DNA of 52,567 nt, taken from assembly GCA_020536535.1 (NCBI GenBank), contig JAHLWZ010000904.1:1-52567 (forward strand), given 5' to 3'. Origin of the DNA: Pelomyxa schiedti. Its lineage: Eukaryota > Protista > Evosea. Of the stretch, positions 28,169-48,800 are shown piece by piece. The notes beneath the pieces were generated by a model. It worked only from the letters and a program-made list of their open reading frames with translations. It did no database searches and was not told the origin of the DNA. The first letter of the stretch is position 1; every line of letters starts with the position of its first letter. The position numbers were made by a program, and so were the translations under genes.

Positions 28169-30449
28169 TTATGTGGTGAAGTGCTCGTCGAGCATCCTCT
28201 TGAGTTCTTGGGAGTCCTGGTGGTCAGGGAAAAGGTCCAGTGCACGGGAAACAAGTTGGAAGCTCTCCTGCAAATCACCCAGTCGGAACATCAGCAGTGC
28301 TGTGGGGCTGTTACTTCACAAAAACCAACCAAAAAGGAAAGTCTACCGCCATTGAACAAGGGTTCGTGAAGATGTGGACAGTTGTACTGCGCACTCTTGA
28401 AGCACATCAGGGCTTGATCCATTGCCTGCTGGTTCCTCAGTTCCAATACCTGTTGAATGAAGTTGGGCTACTTGGAATGGTAAACCATCGGGTAAAAATA
28501 CCCCAAGATTGTTCAGTGCTTCGCCGTGATTTGGGTCTATTGACAGAGTTATCTTGAAGGCGTGCATTGCCATAGTGGTGTCCCCAAGTCCAATCCCTAC
28601 GTGGCCGATATTGTACCAGATGTCCGCTATGTTGGAGTCATCAGCAAGTTCCAATGCTCGCCGAAAACAGTTTATAGCCATATCAAACTGAGAAAAGTGA
28701 ATGGGAGAATTGTCAATGAAGAAACTAACCTGCTGTGAATAAAAGCAAGCTAGCCCCACATTGTTCCACAATTCAGCGTTTTCCACACCCATCTGTAATA
28801 GTCGTCGGTAGTAGCGAAGAGATAGCTCTTCTTGGTTGTTGTAAAAGTGTGAACTCCCAAGGCAAGCAATGGACTCGATATTTGAACTATCAAAATGAAG
28901 TGCCTGGCAAATAATTTTACAAAGTAATCTATTAAGCCACATGTGTACCTTTTTGTAGTTCAGCAGTGATTCTTTGTTATCACCTATCGCATCATACACA
29001 CGTGCAACTCCAAGTATTAGTGACACTTCACCAGGAAATTTTTCGGAGGATGACTGGTAGTACTCTAATGCCTTATTGGGTTGATCCAGGCGTAAGTAGA
29101 CTTTGCATAACCAGAGGTAGGTCTCGATCATGGCCTATCTAGAGATCAATGCTAAACACAGTGGTTCTTTTACAAGTAGACCTGGTCTCGTAAGGAGCTC
29201 TGGAATTGTTTTTCTGCTTCTCTAAACAGTCCCAGCCGGTAATAGCATTTTCCTATTTGTGCTTTCCACCACCAGTCCTTAAACCTATTTAAAAGTTGCG
29301 GAGTTAGTTGAGGTAAAGTACTATGTTTTGATGACGAAAAGAGAGCTCACTCAGCGACCCTGGTACACTCTGCAGCCAGTTCCAAGGCTTTGGTTGCATT
29401 GTTCTCATGATGAAGCAAATAGTTGAAAAGAATCTAGATTTGTTGGGCTGCTTCACTTGTGAAAGGAAGCCTTACCTTCGAGAGAGTAGGCCGTCTTGCA
29501 TATTTACGGAAATCCAACTTCCCAACTGTTACGAATTCGCTTGGAGAGTCTGCTATCATTGACGCCGTTCCTAATCGTACATATCTTACAATTCGGTGAG
29601 ATTAATACAAAAAGGAAAGAAGAAAAACCTGCCGGATGCCGTAATTGGCCGAGAAGCACACGTTACAGGACGAGAGGTTTCAGGCCTTACACCAGTAAGT
29701 GCATTTCTAAGTGTTTGCTGAACAGAACTTGACATTGGGCGCCTGATATGAGCGAATAAGAGGTAAAGTATAACTTACAGAGGAAAAGAAACATACCCAC
29801 TAGCAGACCCCGGCCTGGCGTAACCTGAGATAGGTCGACCAGAGCTGCTTGTAGGTCTTTCCGCAGGAGTTGATAAGCGTTTGAGAAGGGAATCCGCACC
29901 TCCTCCCACAGCACTAGTGCCTGGGCGCTGTATGGAAGTTCCTGGTCTATAAATTGGATCAATGACTGGAAAGGGGTGCATTTGTGAAGGTTTTCCCAAA
30001 AGCAGACTGTTTGGTGTTTTTTTTTTTACCTTGGGGTCTCCTGTATCGCATTCTCATCAAGCAAGATATCAGCAACCCCTTGATCTTCCCATTCAGTTTC
30101 ATCCACATACTTCAATGCCGTCAATGCTCTACACTTTACTGACCTGTGTGGAACTTAAAAAGTCAGATTGTTATATACTGTTTGTGAGAGTGGAATTTGA
30201 AGTGAAGGGTTTTGGTTGTTTGTGCTTTTTTGCTCGTTTGTTTTCTCCCATAACGAATACTGCAATTCGCATACGTACCACGCTTGTTGGTCACGAGGGT
30301 TCGCCGACAACATTGCCGAACATACTTCGATGCACTCTTTGAATCTTGCTTGTATGTGAGACAATATTTTGGGTGACAGGTGTCAGTTACTTTCTTTTTC
30401 TCAAATAACTCATCGCCCGCCACAGCCCTGGCAACTGTTGGTTGTCCAT
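28169..30449 (-). CDS. TTC8: BBSome subunit BBS8 (tetratricopeptide repeat protein 8)
   Basis: AMSYLRKRKFKECIEVC..PRDQQAW; RPGTS; SGRPISGYARP; DWWWKAQIGKCYYRLG; KVYLRLDQP; RYYRRLLQMGV; ADIWYNIG. A short upstream exon from ~30533 is possible. Confidence 0.95.
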
Positions 30450-30792: not shown

Positions 30793-33700
30793 ATGAAAGA
30801 CTTACGATTTTGGTTTATTCTTTCATGCTTTTGCAGTAGTATCTTCTTGGCACAAGGTGTTGGGGCAGAAGAATGTATGGATGAAGTTGTTGGGATAAGA
30901 GGTTCTGATGTGACTGTCAAGTGAGTATCCTATTGGACCTTTCTATGATCACTTGGCTATGAGCACACTTTGTCATTAACCCCGTCTGTTCCCAGTTTGT
31001 TTACCACAATTGCTGGGACTGTAGCTGCTGCAGGTGTAAGGCACTCTGAGCTACCAGCGCAGGCTGGGGCATGTGATTCAAGTGCAGTCATATTAAATTA
31101 TACAGTGGCTGATTGTAGTGATGCAGTGGAAAGCTTGTGCAACGGCACCACTCCTTTCGGTGTTGTGAGTTCTATTTGTGCTCACCATTCAACTCTTAAT
31201 GGTATGTACACAGATTCTTTAGTAAATTGTGAAATGACACTGGAGATTGCAGGTACATGCTACAACTCTGCAAGGCGTTACGTTGGAGTGCCATTCGTGG
31301 GTAGTGCATATGTACTAATGGTCAATGCTGTGGGGTTGTGGACCCAAACTGTGAAGCTCTCAAGAAATGCACTCATTTCAATCATAACTGGAAGAGTATC
31401 ACTGTGGGGTGACCCATTAATTGTAGCCACAAACCCAAATCTTCCTTCGTCACTGCTGTATGTATTCCTCGTTTGCAGAGCTTGTTAATCCAAGTCAGAA
31501 ATCAAAGCATCACTGTTGTTTGGCCTCCAGTTGAAAGGCAAGACTTTTTAGAGGATGCCTTGATGGCATTTGGGGCTCCAAGCAGGTCTCAGTGGGTCAC
31601 CGGGGTAACTGCTACTCCAACAACCCCTGGTGACATTGAGTATTCTACTTTTTTACTTTGTATGAAACCCTTTCCTGTTTTTCTTAGAATTAAGGTGTCC
31701 ACAGGTCGTAGTACGTCATATTCAATAGCATTTGTTGACAGAGCCATAAGTATACATCTTGTGTAGTTTCGTGCCTTCTTATTTCTCATAGCGGCTCTCA
31801 ATTTGTGGACAGCGGTTGCACTATTAGAAAACCACGATGGAGAATTTATTGATCCCTCTCCTGAAGCAATCACTGCTGCAATCAATTCTGCAGATTACAG
31901 TACATCTATTTCGTGGCCTCTACCTGACTTTCTTAATCCCTCTGGAAAAGTGTCTTGGCCGTACGTTGAGTTATAAGTTTATTTATCTATCTCTGATTCT
32001 CAACAGCTTTCCAATAGTGTACACCATTCTCCTGAATCTTCAGGAATCAAGTGACGTTGTAAGTTGTGATGCATACTCCAACTTTCTACAGGTTACCCAA
32101 TGCCAGTGCTCGATCTTCTAAACTCCTCTTAGCTTATACATACAATGCTTACTTCCTCGACAGCTTCTTCCGTCATTCTTCTCGAAGGTTTCATTTCATT
32201 ATCTCGCTCCGTCCTGCAAAGTTCTTCTGTTCATACAAGCTTGAAAGTATTAACTTCCTCGTTGATTTGAATGTCAATCTTTCATAGGCAACTTGCAACG
32301 GCGTCAGCGCCATTCCAAATGAAATTTTTCTGAGAGGAATAGGACCACTTGTAATGATAGATATAATCAATTCATTAGCCGTATCGTATGTGTGTTTTTT
32401 TCCTCAGACATTCAAGTAAAACGGCCTCAGATTCCAGACAATGAACCCTGGACTGACCATGAGTGCTGATAGAGGTACAGTTTTTTTTTTTATATTCTCT
32501 TGTCCTTATTCCTACAAGCATGGGCGGATGTTTGGGAAAATGAATTGAGCTTTGGTGTAGCCGATTTTGCCTTAACTGTTGATGGCATGACATCATTCCG
32601 TACCAACCGCTCCTCTGACTACATAATGATACCACTTCTTGGAGGTCTCTCAACTCACTCAAATCAATTGAATAACTTTTATCAGTACCTTCTGTTATAG
32701 TGTACAACATTCCAGAGTTGGTTGGGCATGATCCCCTTGTTTTATCCCGTGATGTTATCACAAAGATTTTTTTTGGCAACATCACAATGTACTTTGGTTG
32801 TTTCTTAGTTATTGTACCAATAGAATTCAGGTGGAATGATACTGAAATTACTTCCCTACAAACACCCGATCTTCGTTCTCTTATTCCAGCAGAGCCCATT
32901 ATAGTAATTTTTCAGACAGTACCACATGAACAAATTAAGGTAAGAAGTAGGTAATTCTATCTTTGTTAAAAAAACAAGGTGTTAAACGCCGCTCTTTCCT
33001 TGTTTTCTGAAGAATGGGTAAGCTTTATTGTGGGAGGTTTTCTCTGACCTTTACCAGGCTCGGGAAGTCGGGATTCAATCTCTGGCGAATTGGCCGCTTC
33101 TCGAAAAAGAGGGCGCTCACTTCATCACGGTGGATGACTGCAATGGTGTGATTTAAATTTACTACCGTGTGCACTGATTAGTCCAGAACATATAATTGCC
33201 TTTGGAAGTACCCCATATGCGTTATCCTATACTACATGCACTTCAGCAATTTCCCTACGGTGGCAGTATTCGAATATGATAAATAAGTTCAATGATACCC
33301 TGCAACCCAACTCTACAACAGTTGAGGCTGCTCTCAAACAAGCTGGTGTGCCCAATGACATCAATTCTATTGAATCACTGTCATCTAGGAAGTGACCCAT
33401 TTATGTCGCTTCTTGATTTAAATTCCTCCAATGCCTGGCCCATTACTACGATATACTTTGCAACATTTATGAAAGAATGGGTGGACTGTAAAGCAGAATC
33501 TAAGGTCTTCTTTCTTCTTCCCAACTGACCAACCAACTTGCTGATGCAGCTGACCGAATTTTGGTTGTGGATAATTGAGAACCAAACAGCACGCCTAGGA
33601 AGACAGGATCGAGTTTATACCTCTAATTTCACCCAATACTCGTACCTACAGCTTTGTCTGGTATCCAAAAAGAATCTTCCCACTTATTCATTTCCCCAGG

Positions 33701-35138
33701 CCAAGTGCCAAGGTGAATATGTTCTCTCCGACGATGTGTGCGACAGATTACGGCCTGACAAATCACCCAGATGGTGGGTTGTGGGAACATCTCTCGTTTT
33801 TGTTTTGCTGGTTTTAGTCTCAGTATCCTCCTTGACTGCAGCCATCTTACGTAGACGAAGTAAAATACCTTATTTAGAGACATGGTGGCTGATGTGAACA
33901 GACAGGATTTCCCCAAGTGAACCCCTTGAACTTATCATATCTGATCTGTCACTGAAACTCAAAATTGGAGAAGGAAATGCGGGGATCGTGTTTGAAGCAC
34001 TGTGGGGAGGTATAAGCATGCATCAAACACATTTGAGATGTGTAATCTCCCGTCTTTAAGGTACCACCGTAGTGGCAGCAAAGCAATTCAAAGCAAGTTG
34101 TGATCCCTCTTCACTGTTCCATGAAGCCAAAATGCTCAGTGTCCTGCGGCACCCAAATGTTGAACTTCCACATTTTTTTGTGGCACTCACTCGATTCACA
34201 GATCATAGCATTCTATGGCCTTGCAAAGATAGAGGTAATACTGACAATAGGAGTTGAATCGGTTCTAAACAACTCTAGTCGTACTTTTTGGTTGTCACAG
34301 AACTAGCAGAAGGGTCTGCTGAAAGTTTAATACACTACTGGGGAGATTACGCCTCACTGGACGATTTACTCAAACTGGCCAAAGGAACAGCAGCCGGAAT
34401 GGCATTCCTTGAAAAAAACAAGTACTCGCCAGTACTGCAGAGTATCATTAACGCCACCAAAAGGATAGTTCATGGGGATCTGGCACTGCGGAATGTTCTT
34501 TATAAATGCGAAGGAAATGACATTGTCCCCAAGATATCCGACTTTGAGCGGAGTTCACTCAAGAGTGCCCTGCAGAAACCTATGTCAATTCCTGTGCGAT
34601 GGGCTGCTCTGGAAGTTCTTCTTGGAGGGATTCAGTCCACATCTTCAGATGTTTGGTCGTTCGGAGTGGTTCTCTTTTCTCACGAAAATTACTTTATTCT
34701 GATCTTCGCTCAGCTCCTTTGGGAACTTTTTTCGCCCGACACAGAGCCTTATTGTGATGTACCCATAACTGAAGTCATTCCCTTTCTACAGTCAAATCGA
34801 AACCTCAGCAAGCCCACTCGATGCCCAGAGGACTTATATCAGATAATGCTCCTTTGTTGGGCCAGAAATTCTTCTTGCCGTCCTCGGTTCCTGAGTCTAT
34901 TTTCCAAAATCTGGTAATGTGATTCCAATACCCACCTTATTGCACTTTCACCAATACCAAATTCAGCGAAGTCTCTCAGTTGCCTGAGGTTGTATCCCAC
35001 TCACACAGAGATGTGCGTTCCGTGCCTCGGTTCACACACAGACCACAGACCATCCACGTCCCACGAAGCACAGGCCCCATTGACAGTTCTGTTGTCATAA
35101 CCCCCGAGTATGTGGATTCTGCTGGAGTTGCCCTGTAG
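30793..35138 (+). CDS. Single-pass receptor kinase: signal peptide, two PstS-like periplasmic-binding domains, TM helix, tyrosine-kinase-type domain
   Basis: Signal peptide MKDLRFWFILSCFCSSIFLAQG. PstS-like 1 'VKLSRNALISIITGRVSLWGDPLIVATNPNL..ITVVW'; PstS-like 2 'YNIPEL..LVLSRDVITKIFFGNITMWNDTEI..PAEPIIVIF'. TM WWVVGTSLVFVLLVLVSVSSLTAAIL-RRR. Kinase IGEGNAG, VAAK, HGDLALRN, KISDFE, IPVRWAALE, SDVWSFG. Confidence 0.85.
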
Positions 35139-37886: not shown

Positions 37887-40800
37887 TCAGTTAAGAGTCC
37901 CACGGCATTTCAGGGAACCACAGAAACAGGGCACTTTCTCTTCTTCAGGATTGAACTTGTAGTCGTAAGTTATCTCCTTTTTGTTGTGGAAAAGTCGTTA
38001 ATGTTGTTTTTGCAAAGACTGTGAAATGAGTAGTACCTCTCCAACATCTATTGGGTATTTGGCGTAAATGACAATCTTTTTTGTCCCTTCAAACGGGATA
38101 ATTTTTGCATAGCAGTTAGGCTGAAGGGGTCTTAGTTTTTTTTTAAAAAAAAGGTTGATACTGGTACATACACTGCAACTGTGATTTATGAAGCGTGCTA
38201 AATTTCCTTTCCAGGTGGCATCAATGATGACTTCGTCATCAATCCTGAACATATAGCTGCTGCCACCCAATCCGGCTCGATTGTTCCGTTGTTCACGCGT
38301 ATCAGCCGTCTTCTGGCGAATGATTTCGCCTATGTATTCAATTACCAAATCCTCTTTTTCAATAGGTTCCATTGTGAAGAGTCCCCACTCATGTATTTTT
38401 GACCGGGCAAACTTTAACCTTTGTGAAGGATCAGTGGAATAGTGGAGGTATGGAGTACTTTTTCTTTCGCGAAGCTAATTGATCAGATTGGAAGTTTTCG
38501 TTCCTGCAATCACGTCGTTGATTCCTTGCACTGTTCCCGAAGTTACCTTGTAAAAGTCTATGAGAGATTCCTGGAAAGTGACAAGTGACATACAGATAGG
38601 AGGTTTATGACTGCATGAAGTAACTGTAGCTGGCCCTACTGCTAGTGCATTGGCCGTAGTTCTTGCGTGTTTGACAGCTGGTGGAAGCTTAATATAAGGT
38701 TCTGTGCGAGCACATCCAGATGGATTATGGGGTTGCCATTGAGGTGGTGTGTCAAAGAGTTCTGGGAGTTCATATGGAAGGCACAGTTCCATACTAGCCA
38801 AATGTAGGTATGCAGTATCTTCGTCATCAAATCCAGCAATACTAGAGAAATGCTCAGGAAAAATACCAAGACCCCTGGTCCTTACATCTTGTCTTTTGTA
38901 AAGTCCACCACTGGCGGAATGGCAGGACAATACTCAGGTGCAGGTTCTTCAGCCAGCTCATTTGCCTGGTTAGACTCGAGGCTAGCTTCGGGTATAAGCG
39001 GGCTTGCTGATGGTGAGCTGAGTATTTCCGTTGCATATTCTTCTGGGGATGGAGGCTCATCTGATTGAGGGCTGACTTCTGACGATGATTACAATTAGTG
39101 GGGAGTGGAAAGTTTACTTGCCTGGTCTTGAGTCCTTGATGTTGGTTAGGTGGTAAATAAGGTGCATTGCAAACCTCAAGATCTGAAGGTGTCATTGCCT
39201 CTGCTTCCTCCACTTCATCACCCTGCTTCTGCATAACATGGTTAAGTAAGTTAGAAACCAAAAATAAGCCACCTCAGACTCGGAATATGCTTCTCCGTTG
39301 GAATCAGAATCATGTGATGACGGAGAAGATGGTGAAGGGGGTGATGCAGAACGTTGCTGACGTCTGCGGTGTGGGGTGTGGTGACGTGTTGGATGAGTTG
39401 AGAGTAACGGAAAATCATTTTTTGGGGACTGATCATCTCCTATTGCGGGTTGATCATCACCTAGTGCCATGGAGCTATCTGGCTTTTTCTTCAATCTAGG
39501 GAAAAAGAATGAAAATAATTCCAAGAGGAGAAAGTAAACTTTAAAATTGTCCTCTTGCAAGCTGGTCGGGGGATAAGTTCATCATTTGTTGGTATTGCTG
39601 TAACCTTGGCGAATAAGTAGGAGAAATGACTTTACAAATGCACCACTTTTTCACTTTGTGAAGACGTTTGTGCTATGAGCGAAGTTGATGAAGCATTTGC
39701 AAGTGCTGACGATATACAGCCAGTCATCGTTGAGAACAAACATGCTTCTACAATATTTCGTTTACAGTCAGCCAAGGCTACATTGGAAAGCTCTGCAATA
39801 AGTAGGTTGTAGGCACACTCAAGGCATACATCCTCATCATTAAAATCAAGTATCTTATGCCCCTTAATTATTGTTCGAAAGGAGGAACATGTAAACCTTC
39901 TTTGGAAGAGAATTTGAGGTTGGAGGTGCCGGTTCCTGATGCGTCTCCTAATTAATTTTATTGACCAAAAAGGGGAGGAAAAAAGAATTTACCTTATGGG
40001 GGATACATAAAGGTTGGGCAACAGGTGGATTACTAGTCAATGGTATTTCTTTGGCCTCTGGTACTTGCGAGTCCATGATCTCCGTCATTTTTGCTACAGC
40101 CTTTTTCATAAGCATCCCTGTTGTATCAGTTGGCAGAGAAAAAAAAGATAAAAAGGATACCTGTGGGGTCTGCTTGCACGGAAATAGGTATAGAATTATT
40201 GATTTTCATAGTAGGATTTTGTAACACATGTACTGCAGAAAGATTTGAAGAGTATTTGACTTGCCCGATACCCATATGAGCCTGTGATATGTGAGCTGAT
40301 GAATGAGGTGATTAGATACTTTTGTGCGTGGGTGATAGGACACAAAAGCTAACTCTAACTCCCCATAAAGGGCAAAGTGGGTTTTGAGTAGAACGGAGTC
40401 AACTGTCGCAGGAATATTAGATATGAACAAGAGCTTTGAATCTTCTTGGAGTGGGCTATTGGTTGATAAAGGAGGAGAGGAATTTGCTGCCTCTGCATCG
40501 GCAGATAATGAAGTCTCTTTTTCTGGGGATTGTTGCTTTATGGGAGGTTGTGGTGGAAGTGTTGTTGGAGGAGGTGAAGAAGAGTGAGCCTGTGGCTGTA
40601 TCAGTTGAGAAGGTACTGATGTTGGAGGCGAAACAGTATTGGCATCTACCTTTAGTAAAGTAAATAATATTTTCAAATGTGATACTAATGTACAATGAAG
40701 TTGGGCACAATGTAGCTGTTCCAGTGGAATGGTTTTGTAGCAGTCGTAGGATCCCGGGGATCCATAGACACAATGGGCTTGTCACCCTACCAGGAAGAGA

Positions 40801-42932
40801 TTATTGAACGATAGTTGCCTTTTATACACACAGCAGTAAAAACGCCATTGACTCGGTATCGCCTCACATTGCCATCAATAAAAAGTTTCCAGTTGTTCAT
40901 CCCCTAGTAGAATGAGTATGTGGTAATCACACCTTGTTTGGACCTTGATGGGAACAGTAGTTTGGTCAGAAGTTCGATGCATTTTTGGTAGGGGCAAAGG
41001 TTGAAATCCACAACGTTTCACATGATAAGGGGACTTGGAGTTAGAGCTAAATTCAATAGAGGTGAGGGCATGATATTATCTTCTAGAGAGTTAAAAAAAA
41101 ACCTGGTCCTATCACGTAGTGCAGAACCTTGTTAGAACGGAATTAGATCTTTTACAGGAGGGAAAAAGTCAATACCTCTATCATCATTGATTTCCTCATC
41201 GTGCTGTGCTTGAGAGTAGGGAATGAAACCTTAAGTAGGACACGGAATTCCAGGTTTGAAATTACCTGTCAAAAAAGGATTTTCTGTGGTTGACCCAGGT
41301 TGAGCTGGAAGCTCATCAGCCCAAAGTTTGTCCTGTGACACCCCAGCATTACGAGAAGGTGCCTGCGGTGCAGAGTAAATCTATGAAGCTCACATTCAAC
41401 TATACCTTGGGATGAGATTTTGTCATATCCGTGACATTAGACATTGCTGACACACGTGAATTTACTTGAGGTCTTTGATAGTTGTCTCCATTACCACTCA
41501 GTTGTATCACAGTAATATGTTTATTGCTGGAACGACTTCGGCTATTTCTCTGTACATCAGTGGTCTCCTCTTTGATATCAGTATGTCTTTCTTCACTCAC
41601 TTTTCTATCTGCATAATTTCTTTTGCCTCCATTTCTGTCCCATTCTGCATCTCTTACTCGAGTGTCTGGGTGTGTTTTTACATCTCTTTCCCTCTCAATT
41701 GCTCTTGCCTGATCTCTATTTTGGCCTATATCTTGGTCTCTATCATTATCATTTTCCATGTCTTTTTCCCTTTTCCTGTCATGATCTCTTCCCTTTTCCC
41801 TGTCCTTGTCCCTTTCCCTTTCTCTTTCCTTTTCCTTTTCTCGATCCTTTTCTTTTTCCTTCTCTCTTTCTCTTTCTCTTTCTCGTTCTCTGTCCCTTTC
41901 TCTTTCTCTTTCTCTGTCTCTTTCCCTGTCCTTGTCCCTTTCCCTTTCCTTTTCTTTTTCTTTTTCTCTTTCTCTTTCTTTTTCTCTTTCCCTTTCTCTT
42001 TCTTTTTCTTTTTCCCGTTCCCTTTCTCGGTCTCTTTCCCGTTCCCGTTCCCTTTCTTGGTCTCTTTCCCTATTCTTGTCCCTCTCTCTTTCCCTACTTT
42101 CTCTGGCAAAGTACCTCTCCCTGTCATTATCTCTGTCTCTGTCACTGTCCCTGTATCTGGCCCTACTATCACCATCCCTGTCCCTGCTGTCGCGATATCT
42201 ATACCTGTCCGCATCCTTGTCCCCCCTATCCCTTTCCCTGCTGTCACCGTACTTGTCCCTTTCTCTATACACGTCCCTGTCTCTCTCGTTATAGTGGCCG
42301 CCCTGGTGCCTGCCGTCCGCGCCCGGGTACCTCCTCTCCCGCCGCTGCCTCTCCCTGTACCAGTCCACGTACCCCCACCCCGCCATCTCCCCCACCGCGT
42401 CCTGGTACGGCGGGTACTGCCCGCCGTCGCGCCCGTCATACGGGAACAAGTACTCGAAGGTGTCCTCATGCCCAGGGGGGTAGTCCCGCAAGTCCTCCCT
42501 CTCCCGCCCCCTGTCCGCTCCGCTGCTCGCCGTTTTGCTGGCAAAATGGCTGCCGCTGCTGCTGCCGCTGCCGCTGCCGCCGCCGCTTGGCTTGGTCTTG
42601 GCATCGTCGGTCGCGCTGGTGCGCAGGGGGGGCTGCTTGTGGCGGTCCGATTCGTCCGGCTGGATCTCCCCCGCCTCCATGCCGGCGTCCGGCCCAACCT
42701 TGGGGCCCGCCTCCTTCTCCGCTGCCTTCGAAGGGGGCTCGGGCTGCGCCTTCTCGCCACTGCCCGCGCGCGCGGCAGCGCCGCTCCCCTCGCCTCGTGT
42801 GCTCGCGGGGGGCTGTGCCGCCGCCTCGCCCCCTCCCCCGCCGCCACCGCTTGTGTTGGTGGCGCCTCCACCGTCCTCCATAAGCTCGCCTTCCTCCACC
42901 TCGGTGCTGCCTGGCACAGACGTAGACGTCAT
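37887..42932 (-). CDS. SET1: Histone H3K4 methyltransferase Set1/SETD1
   Basis: RRM ([21 protein letters not shown]); Win-like SGCARTEPY; [43 protein letters not shown]|[15 protein letters not shown]; post-[16 protein letters not shown]. Confidence 0.95.
41700..42290 (-). repeat. Coding purine-rich low-complexity repeat (RE/RD/KE dipeptides) in the Set1 N-terminus
   Basis: A (CT)-rich + strand encodes [15 protein letters not shown]... on the - strand. Confidence 0.9.
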
Positions 42933-43177
42933 TGTCGAGGCCCACGCGTACTGCCCGTGTCACTCGCAATCAGGATCAGAGAATTGATTTTTTTTTGATG
43001 TCGACACAGACTGGCGAAGGAAAAAGGTGAAAGGCAAAAAAAGTACAAGCTTGTCTATTGTTGTTGGCGTCGAAGCCTTGTTGTGGGGAGTATAATCACA
43101 AGGGTGGCAACATGTGCCAATCTAAACTTGTGGGAGCGTGCGTAGTTCCTGGTGTCAGGCACAGCAGTTCTATCGTG

Positions 43178-44057
43178 CTATCTTCTCCCGGCCTTTTGCT
43201 GCTCCAGCCTCTTCTGTGCCAGCTCCTTCTCCCTCTGGACGTGGATTTCCAGCACCATATCATGCACCTGCTTCTGCACGACGAGCGCCTCGTCGAGCCA
43301 CACGTCCACCGCGCTGAACTTCCTCTTGAGGTCCTCGAAGCGCTCGCGGGCCGCCTGCACGCGCTGGGACACGCCGTTGACGTGCGGCACCGCGGCGCTC
43401 CGGAACGCCAGCACGGCGTGCGTGTGCGCCTGGAAGTTGTGGTTCGCGCGGACGCACACAGACTCGGTCAGCCGTATGCGGAGGCCGATCACGTCCTGGC
43501 GCTCCGCGGCCTTCTCGGCGTTGGTCTTGAGGAACTCCTGGCACAGGCCGCATATCAGGTGCATAGGGGCCACGTCCAAAAGCTCTTTGTACCTCTGTGT
43601 AGAATTTGTTGTTAGCAAAAAAATAAGCACTGCCAGCCACACTTTTTTTTTTTTTATTGTTGTATGTTGTAGTAGTTAGGGGACTGGAGAATCCCGAAAT
43701 GCTTACTTTGTTGTAGGTCAGTTTCAGGGGCTGGGTTACGTGTACAGCGCTGAGAACTGTCATCTCGGGGTCAGTGGGGGCGCTGCGGTCGGGCCCCGGC
43801 ACGACGGTTACGATGCGCGAGAGCAGCCCCGCGGCGAAGTCCTCTACGCCGCGCACCCTCTCCACGGAGTATTTGGTGTACAGCACGGCATTGGCGCCTC
43901 CTCCGCCCCCAACTATGGTGCCCCCGATGCTTTGTGTGGCGGGCGAGGTGGCCGCGCCTGAATTGTGGGAGGGAGAAGCGTCGCTGGGCTTGGTAGTGCC
44001 AGACGCCGGAGTGGCAGCGGCTGTTGGCTTTGCTGGAGAACCCTGCCCTTGACCCAT
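43178..44057 (-). CDS. BORCS5: BORCS5/myrlysin-like (BORC subunit 5) myristoylated coiled-coil protein
   Basis: N-terminal MGQGQG; IVTVVPG..TDPEMTVLSAVHVTQPL; LDVAPMHLICGLCQEFLKTNAEKAAERQDVIGLRI matches the remembered BORCS5 pattern LDxxxxxxxCxxxQxxLxxxAExxAxxQxxxxxRI. One intron. Confidence 0.7.
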
Positions 44058-44206
44058 CAATCACCGAAACTTTTTCGTTTTTTTCCCGAAGAGGATTGAG
44101 GTGCCTGCCAGGAGTCCTCCCTCAGCCCCATCGTCGTCATGCCGTAAGGAAGAGTTGGGAAGCACAGTGAGTTTGTGATTCTGTCTTTTTTTTTTTTCCT
44201 GCAAAG

Positions 44207-44833
44207 ACGACGAGCAACACATCCGGGGAAAGGCAGTTTAGCACGCCGGGGTGGAGAGTTGTAGCCCACCCTGAGGACGACGAGGAGTCGGAAGACGACG
44301 AAGAAGATGGCGATTCGAGCGAAGAAGGAGGCAGCAGCGGGGAGGACACGTCGGACGAGGCCTTCGCGAGGCACTACGAGGAGGTGTCCGCCAAGTGCGC
44401 GAGGCTGCGGGAGTGCGACGTGGCGCTGAGGGACGAGGCCAGGAGGCTGCAGCAGCTGCACATCCGGCGGCTCAACATACCGCCGGCGACCCCCGTGCTC
44501 GTGTGCCCCGCCACGCCGGCCGCCTCCGCTGCTGCTGCAACCACGGCGTCGCGTTCTTCGGCGTCGTCGCGCTCTGCTGCGGCGGACTCCCTTGGGTCGT
44601 CGGGGGTAAGGGGAAGTAGTGCGCGCGAGGAGGAGGCGACAGGCACAGAGAGGGCGGAATTTGGGGAGGGTGGCGTCAGTTCCCCTGCTGATTACGAGGA
44701 AGGTGACGATATTGTTTGTGTGTACTCGGGCGGACCCGAGGCACTGGAGGAGCGTATACTGCGACAATCTGCAAGAAGAAGTGCCAAGAGAGGCAGAGCA
44801 GGACCACCCACACCAACAGAAAACAACACCTGA
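44207..44833 (+). CDS. Small acidic protein with a PEHE-like motif (start codon unresolved)
   Basis: FSTPGWRVV-(acidic tract)-EDTSDEAFARHYEE resembles the PEHE domain of MSL1/KANSL1. GC-rich, coding-like composition; stop at 44833. Confidence 0.55.
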   Translation, partial: TTSNTSGERQFSTPGWRVVAHPEDDEESEDDEEDGDSSEEGGSSGEDTSDEAFARHYEEVSAKCARLRECDVALRDEARRLQQLHIRRLNIPPATPVLVCPATPAASAAAATTASRSSASSRSAAADSLGSSGVRGSSAREEEATGTERAEFGEGGVSSPADYEEGDDIVCVYSGGPEALEERILRQSARRSAKRGRAGPPTPTENNT

Positions 44834-45278
44834 CCACAAGGCAACCACCAAAAAAAAAAAAACCAGCTATCCCATAATTTATGTTACCAAAAAAACCCGT
44901 TGCTGTTTAGGGAAACAGAGCGACCCAACTTTCGTTCTGTGGGGGGCTCCTGGTGCTCCAATGTGAACGTGTTACTTCGAATATCATCATGCACTGCAAG
45001 ACTAACTGGCCACACCCGACTCTCACTCGGGACCGTGGCTCCCTTCTGCCTCGGTTGCTAACTGGGGTTAGAGGGGTAACCCCACGTTACTCTACTCACC
45101 ACCCCCATGGAATTAATTTTTTTGTTCTGGGTGGTGCTCATTGGTAATAGACAATAAACTCTTGTATTTGTGTTTGGGCTTCTATCTCCCTTACTTCACC
45201 AGTAAAACAACAACCAGCACAAATCACAGTGTGGTGCACTACCCAAACCCAACCTCAGCACACCTGCATAACTGGATC

Positions 45279-45594
45279 ATGGGTGAAGGGGCAAAGGTGT
45301 CAGTGTTTTCCTCTCTGAAGTCTTCACCCAAAAACCCAAGGGGCTCCCACAAGTGGCTCTTGGTCATGTGATCCACAAGAAAATGAAACACAGCAGGACA
45401 GGCACTCAACAAACTCAGTTTGACCACCTCCTGACAAAGACAATTGAAGCACATGACAAGGAGCTGGCCAACATTGATGCAGCACATTCCCAGCTGATTA
45501 CTGTTATGAAACAACAGATTGAAATTCAGCAACAAATGTGTGATCTCTAATTTATTGCACATGTAACTTTTTTCAGCATGGGCATCACCTTGTG
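45279..45594 (+). CDS. Possible small coiled-coil protein or gene fragment
   Basis: MGEGAK|GLPQVALGHVIHKKMK..FDHLLTKTIEAHDKELANIDAAHSQLITVMKQQIEIQQQ with plausible GT-AG introns. No recognisable family. Confidence 0.3.
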
Positions 45595-45889
45595 AAGATG
45601 TTATGCTTGAGAGTTTATTTATCATTTTACCATTTCCCCTTAAAGGATCCTTGACAGAAGATGAGTATGGTTGCCAGTGTCACAACTCAGCAGACAAGTG
45701 GTTGGAGGACAAGGACTGTCAAGGTAATATCTCTGGGTGTTATGCAGACAGTCCCACCATGTTTTAGGATGAAGGGATATTTGTTTTTCTCAAGGAAATC
45801 AGACCATCAAAAGTTTCCCTTGACCAGGGAAACTGTTTCGAAGAAACAATAAAAATTCCAGGTGGGTTATTGGCGGCGAGTGAACCACG

Positions 45890-48800
45890 ATGAACCAAGA
45901 CTCCTTCAGTGCGTGGGAGAGTGGCCTTGGGTTTTTTTCTATTTACCCATAATACAGGGGCGGAGTTCCCTGTGAAAACGATGAGCGAGCACACGCAGAG
46001 GGTAATGTGCATTTCGCAGGTGGATGGTGAAGTTTGGAGCGGGTCGTCCCATAACTCAGTTTATGTGCACTCTGCTTTGGTATTTTTTTTTTTACTTTGC
46101 CTGCACATTGTGAACTTGACACCATTTTCTTTTTTATCGCATTTTATTGAAAATAATGTGGCCTATGTAGACTGGTCAATTTCTGAGGTCTGCTCAAGCC
46201 CCTGGGAAAGGGGATGATGATGACTATGTTTGTTCAATTTTACGTGTTGATTCATATGTGTGGTGTGGTGGAAATAATGGTACCATCACCATTTTCAATT
46301 CAAAGGTACACTCTAGCCAGAACCCTCTGAACTTCTTAATTAATATTTGTTCCACAGACAGTTTCTGTAACACAATTAAAAGGGCACACTGGGTCTGTGG
46401 GTTGTCTGACAGAAAGCCCATGCTTTGTTTGGAGTGGTTCTGGGGACAGAACTGTTAGAGCTTGGGATAAAAAGGTTCTTTGGCTTGCTCCCGTTTATTT
46501 TGTACTAACTTTTGTCTACAAAGACTGGAAAATCTATCTTCCAGCTTGCAGGGCATACAAATTGGGTAAAATGTATTGCATCTGTTGGAACCAAAGTCTG
46601 GAGTGGCTCTGATGACTGCAGTATTCGAATTTGGGATGAAACAGTAATACAATCGTTTGCAAAATTGACACTAAGGTTACCAGACAGGAGAAGCTGGAAC
46701 CCAATTGGTAGGCCATACAGGTGGCGTACTCAGCCTTCTACATGTGGGAACTGCTGTTTGGAGCGGGTCTGCAGATAAAACAATCAAACTCTGGGATAGC
46801 CAGGTAAATTATTCTCATATACCTCCCATCTTGCAACACTTCTTAGACGGGCCGTTCACTCCGCGATCTACAAGGACACACAGGATGGGTAAATGCACTG
46901 GCCTTTAAGGAAGGAGTTGTATGGAGTGGTTCAAACGATAAAACAATACGCGGTTGGAACAGCAAGGTTAGGTTTTAATGCCCAGTTTGTATTTAAGCTT
47001 TGGTTAGACACATCATTGCATCAGAATTCTCACTGGGCATCGTGGATCTGTATGGTGCATGACATCAGTCACCAACAGTCCTTTTATTTGGAGTGGTGGA
47101 GGTGATGCTCTGCTATGCATGTGGAACACCTCAGTAAGTTCCCATCACATAAACCAATAAATAGTTTATCTCAAAAGGACCCCTCTCCCACCCCTGAACC
47201 TCGCACTGGTTCAATGATGAATGTGTCTGGTGAGTATCCCTATTTCCTACAATGCATGTAACTTTCACAAGGTGCCCAATTAAGCCGAAGTGCACGGTCA
47301 GCCAGTATTGCACCGACACGCATCTCTGGTAATTCAGCCGATCCTCCCCCATTCAGTGAAACGGAATCCCACATTGTTACGACATGTAAGTGGCCCATTC
47401 AATGTTGCCTCGTTTTTTTAAAAAAATCAATAACAAATAGCTATTCAACCCAGTGGTTCAGTGGCTGTACCTCAACCGTCACAGCCCTTGGCTCTTGCCT
47501 CTAAAGGATTTGAGGTAAGTACAACACCTTGTTTTTGTGTGTAATGAAATCTTAGCCGCCAGATTCGTGGAACAATCCACCAACCAACAGCACAACAAAT
47601 CTATCCATCCTACCCATCCAGGACACTTCCAAAATTCATAGACACTCAAAATCTAAGGTTTTGTCCCCTTGTTTCTTCTTATTCTTGGTGACCTCATAGG
47701 CATTTAAAAGGCCTTGCGTGCAGAAAGAGAAAACTCCATTCTTCGACTGCAGGATGTAAGTGTTTCCCCTTTTTCCTTCACTGTGTCACTCATATCACAA
47801 GGATCATGCTGAATTAAAGCACCAACTTAGTGCAACAAGAAGGGACCTAGATACTAAAATCCAGGTCCTCTCATCACAAGTTAGTTTCCCAAATTTTTTT
47901 TTTTTGTTATTCCACCAAATCTCACAACCCTAGCTGGAGCAAGTTCAAGTCCCCCTTCCAGATACTCAACTGTATTTACCTAAAACTGATGTGGCAAGAC
48001 AGTACTCAACTGTTGCTTCCATCACCACTTTCCACACATTAATCAATTGTAGCAAGGTATCAACTTGCAAAGTGAAGATGCATTGATTCAAAACTCGGGA
48101 AGATTTGGCTCGGAGTCAGTAAATTATAACTCAACAACTCCTGTTTCTTTATCTGCACGTATGGCTGAGACAGTTCCAAGCTCTGTGGGGGAAGAAAATG
48201 TATCCATTATTTGTTGGCAATTAACTCATTCCTCTAGGAAGTCATAGAGGAATTGAGTCGAAAATTACAAGAAGAAGAAGCTAGATCCCAAAGCGCTGAA
48301 GCTTTAGCAAGGTTCGCGTTTGCTTCCATTGAGGCAATCAATTGACTGTTCTCCTAGTGAGTTGGAAGCGGCACTTGAAGCCAGCAGAAGCGAAACGGCC
48401 AAATTTCGGGAATCTATGCAGTTGCAAAGAGAGCAGTTTGAAAAAGAAAAACAAGTCTCTTCTTTTTGATTAACTTTGTTTCTTAATTTTTTACAGGCTT
48501 GGAAAGCCAAAGCAGACTCTCAGTTGCAGGTTGCTTCCTCAAGGATGGAGGACCAAACATCAGAAATACAAGAATTACAAGATTCCCTATCGCAGTTGAA
48601 TGAGGATCTAGCAGAAGAACGCCGGTGAGGATCTAAATTGAGCTTTAGACCTTAACTGTAATCTTTAGAAGGTATAATGCAGAAAAATCTGAAAACATTC
48701 GAGCTTTTCAAGCTGAGAAACAAGAATTGCAGGAACGGGTCAAACAACTGAATACACAGATTGCTGAAGAAAGAAGGTATAGAAACCTGCTCCTATCCCT

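Follow-up and report, generated by a model that had tools for sequence, protein, structure and literature searches.

A Pelomyxa schiedti gene combines two PstS-type binding-protein modules, a transmembrane helix and a tyrosine-kinase-type domain in a single-pass receptor

Results

Layout and integrity of the gene

We analysed a stretch of 52,567 nucleotides (the window: contig JAHLWZ010000904.1, positions 1 to 52,567) from Pelomyxa schiedti, a free-living anaerobic archamoeba whose genome was obtained by single-cell sequencing (PMC8887013). The gene at positions 30793-35138 of the + strand encodes a membrane receptor with two PstS-like domains outside and a tyrosine-kinase-type domain inside. 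A first-pass annotation, made from the letters alone, had listed a signal peptide, two copies of a conserved PstS-type block, a transmembrane (TM) helix with an RRR stop-transfer, and the kinase motifs HGDLALRN and PVRWAA, and all of these elements are present where it had placed them. By exact exon-by-exon mapping, the interval is the coding sequence (CDS) of the database protein 'serine/threonine kinase [Pelomyxa schiedti]' (P0001, 1060 aa), with the ATG at 30793 and the stop codon ending at 35138, a public name that under-describes the protein. P0001 was recovered by an exhaustive HMMER search with exon 2 against a library of 1.8 billion proteins, and the full-length database protein was needed for domain detection, as Pfam searches with single-exon translations gave only a weak PBP_like_2 hint. 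Mapped back onto the window, it is encoded by 25 annotated exons separated by 24 GT-AG introns of 39-118 nt, mostly 41-53 nt, in a window of ~46% G+C. The genome paper, which gives a figure of 7.4 introns per gene, contains no discussion of this receptor protein (PMC8887013). The features of the gene, all on the + strand, are the following:

30793..35138 (+): whole CDS, 25 annotated exons and one proposed micro-exon
30793..30861 (+): signal peptide, aa 1-23, an N-terminal hydrophobic stretch read from the sequence
30865..32293 (+): PstS-like domain 1, aa 25-372, exons 1-9 (TIGR00975, PDB, AlphaFold2, Foldseek)
31351..31520 (+): first conserved 'LSR..I..I..G.I..W.D...P...I.V' block, aa 145-187, split by intron 3
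31515-31544 (+): VVWPPVERQD, in domain 1
32294..33735 (+): PstS-like domain 2, aa 373-700, membrane-proximal (TIGR00975, AlphaFold2, Foldseek)
32736..32909 (+): second conserved block, aa 477-520, split by intron 12
32979..33017 (+): proposed 39-nt micro-exon, 13 aa, VLNAALSLFSEEW, within annotated intron 13 (32940-33057)
33346..33388 (+): intron 15, 43 nt skipped by an RNA contig, GT..AG
33772..33858 (+): TM helix and RRR stop-transfer, aa 713-741, hydropathy peak 2.72
33949..34908 (+): tyrosine-kinase-type catalytic domain, aa 758-1002 (PF07714, E 1e-55)
34422..34463 (+): intron 22, in frame and with no stop codon, 42 nt skipped by an RNA contig, GT..AG
34471..34494 (+): catalytic loop HGDLALRN (DLAxRN type, HRD changed to HGD)
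34540..34548 (+): DFE instead of DFG, the same change as in the paralogue
34591..34614 (+): P+1 loop PVRWAALE (tyrosine-kinase-type PxxW)
34909..35135 (+): C-terminal tail with one Tyr near its end (PEYVD, 35103-35117)
34914..34966 (+): intron 24, 53 nt skipped by an RNA contig, GT..AG

The interval is a real, transcribed and single gene of P. schiedti that encodes a type-I membrane receptor. Three splice junctions, one within domain 2 and two within the kinase portion, are borne out by single-cell RNA-seq contigs of the same study, all of them GT..AG and all matching P0001. The contig across intron 24 extends into the 3' untranslated region (UTR), to 35175, and DNA runs of the same sample carry the gene sequence unspliced. 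RNA-seq, which the first-pass annotation had proposed as a check on splicing, returned the three junctions as annotated, but no contig that joins ectodomain and kinase. At the DNA level, exon 33700-33859 encodes the end of the ectodomain together with the TM helix and the RRR stop-transfer, and a 42-nt intron alone lies between it and the exon with the kinase glycine loop. Given this exon and its short intron, a paralogue with the same order of parts and 15 intron positions shared with that paralogue, two separate genes are implausible. The earlier description of an intronised gene in a eukaryote is likewise correct, the host being an amoebozoan.

The ectodomain consists of two PstS-type modules

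The matches of the two ectodomain halves to PstS and to each other are far beyond chance, as is that of the kinase domain to PF07714. PF12849 (PBP_like_2) scores 45.3 bits on the whole protein, against a cut-off of 27, and 23.7 and 26.5 bits on the two halves alone; Pfam finds no other domain in the ectodomain. The NCBIfam PstS profile TIGR00975 matches aa 25-380 with an E-value of 9.5e-17 and aa 381-715 with 1.9e-20, at 61 and 73 bits, which is far under the 205-bit cut-off of the PstS equivalog. Among PDB sequences the first half matches PstS 35yt (E 1.2e-10) and the second half PstS3 (E 3.7e-4). A profile built from four domains (two genes with two domains each) finds metagenome PBP_like_2 proteins with E-values down to 2e-12 in a database of 5.8 billion sequences, and a language-model search also reaches PBP_like_2 clusters, one of which is a diatom cluster.

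Structure prediction points to the same fold. The AlphaFold2 model of domain 1 (pLDDT 68, pTM 0.72) has PhoX and PstS as its best PDB matches in Foldseek (E 1.5e-17, TM-scores 0.68/0.75), and that of domain 2 (pLDDT 77, pTM 0.76) has E. coli PstS 1pbp (E 1.4e-20, TM-scores 0.80/0.82). For each model the top ~20 matches are PstS/PhoX-type phosphate-binding proteins with TM-scores of 0.68-0.82, the models being not independent of the sequence evidence because the input alignment held PstS-like rows. By profile match and by the predicted bilobed type-II binding-protein fold, both halves belong to the PBP_like_2/PstS superfamily, so that the expectation of finding PstS twice is borne out.

The two halves align with each other over 232 residues (21% identity, E 2e-6), in agreement with the duplicated clamp described in the first-pass annotation. 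A C(N/Q)G motif precedes each repeat unit and stands at the start and at the end of domain 2, as part of Cys-containing linkers that bound the modules, and phase-0 introns lie exactly two residues before this motif at both unit boundaries (exon starts 32288 and 33700). Such introns suggest that the PstS unit was copied together with its exon boundaries. Elsewhere, most introns of domain 1 and domain 2 lie at different positions. The ectodomains of P0001 and of its paralogue each carry 12 N-glycosylation sequons.

A stretch at 31279-31360 (aa ~121-148), GSAYVLMVNAVGLWTQTVKL, is very close to the consensus of the FG-GAP_2 repeat. Through it, 85 FG-GAP repeat proteins of bacteria were returned from the 1.8-billion-protein library, and PstS was not visible in the exhaustive exon-2 HMMER search at that library size. 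The likeness of GSAYVLMVNAVGLWTQTVKL to FG-GAP_2 appears to be a chance resemblance of motifs that is amplified by repeats. An FG-GAP identity was rejected, as a short-motif, repeat-summed artefact in a protein to which Pfam assigns no FG-GAP.

The phosphate site is replaced

In E. coli PstS, phosphate is contacted by T10, F11, S38, D56, R135, S139, G140 and T141 (PMC6549937). In our alignment, the corresponding motifs GAGST, GSGAG, SD and RSDGSGTT are kept in the metagenome PstS-like matches, whereas none of the four Pelomyxa domains, two in each paralogue, retains GAGST, GSGAG or RSDGSGTT; the equivalent of Asp56 is possibly retained in three of the four. In place of the loop from R135 to T141, domain 1 has PPVERQD and domain 2, which is acidic there, has TVPHEQI. 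The protein also differs from the PstS equivalog in context, being fused to a TM helix and a kinase instead of partnered with PstCAB. Because the canonical contact motifs are lost, phosphate is an unlikely ligand, and canonical phosphate binding by the ectodomain would, judged from these replacements, be very unlikely. The best-conserved stretches of domain 2 between the paralogues include the cleft-lining ALTVDG and PHE..VLNAALS, while the cleft motifs of domain 1 are not conserved between them. Given that its cleft motifs are kept, the membrane-proximal domain 2 would be the likelier ligand site. The receptor may sense a nutrient or another small molecule, as the first-pass annotation had suggested.

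The cytoplasmic domain is of the tyrosine-kinase type

The best 60 PDB matches of the kinase are all tyrosine kinases (EGFR, CSK, Src, Abl), as are all database matches that bear a kinase-family name. After the paralogue, the nearest kinases are protist tyrosine kinases that have no binding-protein domain, followed by metazoan tyrosine kinases. A quick maximum-likelihood (ML) tree, from which many near-duplicate metazoan RET and MET rows were omitted, placed the two Pelomyxa kinases together (support 99) and next to Mastigamoeba m51a1_g1323 (support 88), inside the tyrosine-kinase clade; five kinases from the P. schiedti genome that are Ser/Thr- or TKL-like (HRDIKxxN, HRDLTSNN) fell outside this group. 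Membership in the tyrosine-kinase group, a point that the first-pass annotation had left to be checked, thus appears well supported but not formally settled by matches and by a tree built with no curated TKL references.

The two loops read HGDLALRN and PVRWAALE in P0001 and HGDLALRN and PIRWTAPE in the paralogue. Compared with the tyrosine-kinase signature, HRD has G in place of R and APE has L in place of P (PVRWAALE), and the ALRN variant is also found in Filamoeba, in other protist tyrosine kinases and in ACK. The essential catalytic residues are present in both paralogues: the Lys of VVAAK(785)QF (Lys785 in P0001), the alpha-C Glu of HEAKML, the Asp of HGD, the Asn of LRN (Asn879) and the Asp of DFE. 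Kinases that have lost the HRD arginine alone are known as non-RD kinases, and many of them are active. The domain shows this non-RD pattern and would not depend on phosphorylation of its activation loop.

Signal peptide, ectodomain, single TM helix and cytoplasmic kinase lie on one polypeptide, which is the architecture of a receptor tyrosine kinase. Pfam finds PF07714/PF00069 as the only cytoplasmic domains of P0001, and no histidine-kinase (DHp/CA) or phosphorelay output. The tail of the paralogue ends in DIYVNIAV, resembling a Grb2-type pYxN docking site for SH2 domains. In the P. schiedti genome, matches to SH2 exons number at least 25 and those to PF07714 well over 100.

One paralogue and a narrow distribution

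Profile searches of the genome, in which the first-pass annotation had suggested counting copies, found two. The one paralogue (P0087, 1048 aa) lies on contig C820 at 43151-47317, has 21 introns and shows the same layout of signal peptide, two PstS domains, TM helix and kinase, and the 15 shared intron positions are identical in column and phase. Identity between the two proteins is 31-33% in each ectodomain domain, 47% in the kinase, which is the most conserved part, and ~33% overall. Since the same domain is ~31-33% identical across the paralogues and domains 1 and 2 only ~20% identical to each other, the tandem duplication is older than the duplication of the gene.

In the 52-Mb assembly, TIGR00975 and the four-domain profile match only the loci of P0001 and P0087. 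A scan of JGI metagenomes with the pair of domain-2 sequences gave 127 relatives of 21-30% identity, all of them continuous PstS-like genes, and none of these adjoins a kinase gene. Conversely, among the best 120 relatives of the kinase, PF12849 occurs only in the two Pelomyxa proteins. A word-indexed search with the whole ectodomain returned only P0001 itself and missed even the paralogue, and is for that reason weak evidence for an absence of relatives. A six-frame genome search for SBP_bac_3 (PF00497) gave nothing at E 0.001, at a poor sensitivity that is due to the short exons. Across the genome, the protein-database searches and the JGI metagenome scan, the combination of a PstS-fold tandem with a tyrosine kinase was found nowhere else, and a full-text literature search found no paper on a PBP_like_2 plus kinase architecture. 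The restriction of this architecture to Pelomyxa is provisional, as the searches were limited in sensitivity.

The observation made in the first-pass annotation, one gene with two PstS-type folds, a TM helix and a tyrosine-kinase-type domain, is therefore confirmed by profiles, AlphaFold2 with Foldseek and PDB matches, and its suggestion that phosphate might not be the ligand agrees with the replaced contact motifs. Its interpretation is partly supported. The direct capture of a bacterial transporter clamp is not shown by the data, the nearest prokaryote-like PstS-type sequences being only 21-31% identical, and PBP_like_2 domains occur in eukaryotes as well, in the diatom cluster and in a fusion in Plasmodiophora with a seven-transmembrane (7TM) receptor (PMC4815078).

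A proposed micro-exon, sequence differences and flanking genes

Annotated intron 13 is, at 118 nt, the sole length outlier among the introns, and positions 32979-33017 within it are probably a micro-exon that is missing from the public gene model. The candidate exon is in frame, and its AG/GT flanks give introns of 39 and 40 nt with GT..AG on both sides. Its 13 residues are 73% identical to the paralogue's contiguous exon, and their addition turns a two-piece domain-2 match of 56.0 bits into an unbroken one of 64.5 bits, as scored by a hidden Markov model (HMM) built solely from the prokaryote-like metagenome PstS-like (PBP_like_2) matches. The RNA contigs on the gene do not reach it.

In contigs of other runs, three coding positions deviate from the window (E61K, V483I and P1036Q, at 31048, 32754 and 35062), as do intron or UTR sites, among them 1-nt indels at 30935 and 32480. 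At position 32754 both DNA contigs, X2 and X3, have A where the window has G. These differences could be allelic or could originate from cell-to-cell variation or amplification.

Both flanking genes lie on the opposite strand: 28343-29131 (-) resembles a TPR-repeat protein and 37998-38372 (-) an exon of a SET-domain methyltransferase with an NHSC motif, and neither has an evident link to the receptor. At 41400-42932 (-), an open frame of 510 aa is dominated by RD/RE/EK dipeptide repeats, as in an RS-like low-complexity protein, and accounts for the peak of 61% G+C at 42-44 kb.

Discussion

Receptor tyrosine kinases are usually regarded as an invention of the animal lineage with ectodomains for protein ligands. 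Kinases with a binding-protein fold as their sensor are already known, namely the Venus kinase receptors (VKRs) of invertebrates (PMC2680970) and the bacterial sensor kinase BvgS (PMC4352136). VKRs combine a flytrap ectodomain with a tyrosine kinase and are activated by small molecules, namely amino acids (PMC2680970, PMC4026697). In P0001, too, a single membrane pass links a bilobed binding-protein ('Venus flytrap') ectodomain to a kinase of the tyrosine-kinase type. However, VKRs have one flytrap of the class C G-protein-coupled receptor (GPCR)/ANF type and an insulin-receptor-like kinase, and are confined to Metazoa, whereas P0001 has two PstS-type modules and a kinase of the Archamoebae lineage with HGD and DFE. 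With PBP_like_2 as its only ectodomain type, a kinase that is sister to a Mastigamoeba kinase and an amoebozoan host, it falls outside the VKR family and looks like an independent assembly.

The likeness to BvgS lies in two tandem extracytoplasmic type-II binding-protein modules, one TM segment and a cytoplasmic kinase. In BvgS the membrane-proximal flytrap is the key one, and unliganded flytraps keep the kinase active (PMC4352136). The output differs, as BvgS signals through a histidine kinase accompanied by PAS and phosphorelay domains and P0001 carries a eukaryotic domain of the tyrosine-kinase type; the flytraps differ too, those of BvgS being of the amino-acid-binding type and those of P0001 of the PstS type. 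The histidine-kinase output with phosphorelay that marks the BvgS family was not found in P0001. By analogy, the receptor would work like a VKR- or BvgS-type sensor, yet it belongs to neither family.

With PstS and PhoX (TIGR00975, PF12849; PDB 1pbp, 5i84) the ectodomain shares the fold, the conserved core block and Foldseek TM-scores of up to 0.82. Unlike these proteins, P0001 has no phosphate contacts and no transporter partner, and is tandem, membrane-anchored, kinase-fused and intron-rich. Another PstS-type domain that forms the outer part of a eukaryotic membrane receptor has been described in Plasmodiophora brassicae, where PBP_like_2 is fused to a 7TM (class C GPCR-like) receptor (PMC4815078); its output is 7TM and not a single-pass kinase, and the likeness is one of architecture. 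Amoebozoan tyrosine kinases exist in Acanthamoeba and Physarum, three of those in Physarum with a single TM helix (PMC4758236). They resemble P0001 in their type of kinase, with a single TM helix in some and with SH2 readers present, but none is reported with a binding-protein ectodomain (PMC4758236). Binding-protein ectodomains also go unmentioned in a survey of the transmembrane kinases of protists (PMC10463195). Mastigamoeba m51a1_g1323 (P0090), the nearest kinase found after the paralogue, is cytoplasmic and has SAM domains and canonical HRD and DFG motifs.

We propose that P0001 is a ligand-regulated single-pass receptor tyrosine kinase in which the membrane-proximal PstS-fold module senses a ligand other than phosphate, a reading to which we assign a probability of roughly 60%. 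The ligand would bind in the cleft of one flytrap module, more likely that of domain 2, and closure of the clamp may alter the geometry of a receptor dimer. The changed geometry would switch the non-RD kinase on or off, and the kinase may then phosphorylate the tail tyrosine, other substrates or both, to be read by SH2 proteins. Several points weigh against this proposal. The canonical ligand contacts are all lost, and the modules may be vestigial clamps or may have proteins as their ligands. HGD for HRD, DFE for DFG and an activation loop that has no Tyr are atypical in both paralogues, and kinase activity is a prediction. None of the single-cell RNA contigs on the gene bridges the ectodomain to the kinase. 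The AlphaFold2 models come from a 10-row alignment that included PstS-like proteins, domain 1 being of medium confidence (pLDDT 68), and the kinase tree is a quick ML search with no curated TKL outgroup.

The first of these points would be accommodated if the PstS-fold modules were not small-molecule clamps at all, but rigid or constitutively closed structural modules, or modules for adhesion or for the binding of proteins or glycans. The receptor would then be on by default or regulated by contact, in part like BvgS, whose tandem flytraps set the precedent of signalling with no bound ligand (PMC4352136). The loss of the eight canonical ligand contacts in four of four domains speaks for such modules, as do the domain-1 cleft motifs that differ between the paralogues and the 12 N-glycosylation sequons per ectodomain. 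We consider it unlikely, though it deserves to be taken seriously, because the domain-2 cleft motifs ALTVDG and PHE are among the best conserved in paralogues that are only ~33% identical, which argues for a constrained pocket. That the receptor is still a sensor of phosphate or a related oxyanion, through a re-built site, would fit the fact that the closest structures and profiles are all those of phosphate-binding proteins. Nevertheless, no contact motif survives, Arg135 and the Ser139-Thr141 loop are replaced in both domains, and the TIGR00975 scores stay far short of the equivalog cut-off, so that we regard a phosphate sensor as highly improbable.

On the cytoplasmic side, the domain could be a pseudokinase or a very weak kinase and the protein a scaffold or co-receptor. 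HGD, DFE and the lack of an activation-loop tyrosine in both paralogues are what such a domain might show, and its closest relatives retain HRD and DFG. However, the catalytic Lys, alpha-C Glu, catalytic Asp, Asn and metal-binding Asp are all kept, the kinase is the part that is most conserved between the paralogues, and loss of the HRD arginine alone is compatible with activity, which makes an inactive domain decidedly unlikely. Least credible of all, and close to negligible, is an artefact, in which a predictor fused neighbouring genes, a bacterial contaminant was sequenced or an FG-GAP repeat protein was mistaken for a PstS fold. It could appeal to the FG-GAP_2 proteins returned by the exon-2 search and to the ectodomain-kinase bridge that is absent from the RNA contigs. 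But the FG-GAP matches rest on a single motif of ~45 residues, summed over up to 12 repeats, and Pfam does not find FG-GAP in P0001 even at E 1; a bacterial contaminant is excluded by the 24 spliceosomal introns; and fusion by a predictor conflicts with the TM exon that joins both halves, with the 42-nt intron that leads to the kinase and with the same layout in an independent paralogue. The artefact readings are thus contradicted by evidence already in hand.

If the proposed ligand-regulated receptor is real, it would give, in an amoebozoan, a second and independent case, beside the invertebrate VKRs, of a flytrap joined to a tyrosine kinase, and would match in a eukaryote the tandem-flytrap sensor BvgS of bacteria. 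It would offer a tractable case for the coupling of binding-protein closure to a single-pass kinase, and would also inform us on what the PstS fold binds after the loss of its phosphate site and on phosphotyrosine signalling in free-living anaerobic protists. A bolder and more tentative version, which we hold to be possible but rather doubtful, is that Pelomyxa, or its lineage within the Archamoebae, independently invented a 'Venus kinase receptor' in which a tandem flytrap derived from PstS, with a rebuilt, acidic pocket for a ligand other than phosphate, gates a tyrosine-kinase-type enzyme. In that case, a small-molecule-gated phosphotyrosine pathway would have arisen in a free-living anaerobic amoeba, by the duplication of an exon-bounded module outside animals, and conceivable ligands would be a cation, an amine or a metabolite that passes between the amoeba and its prokaryotic symbionts.

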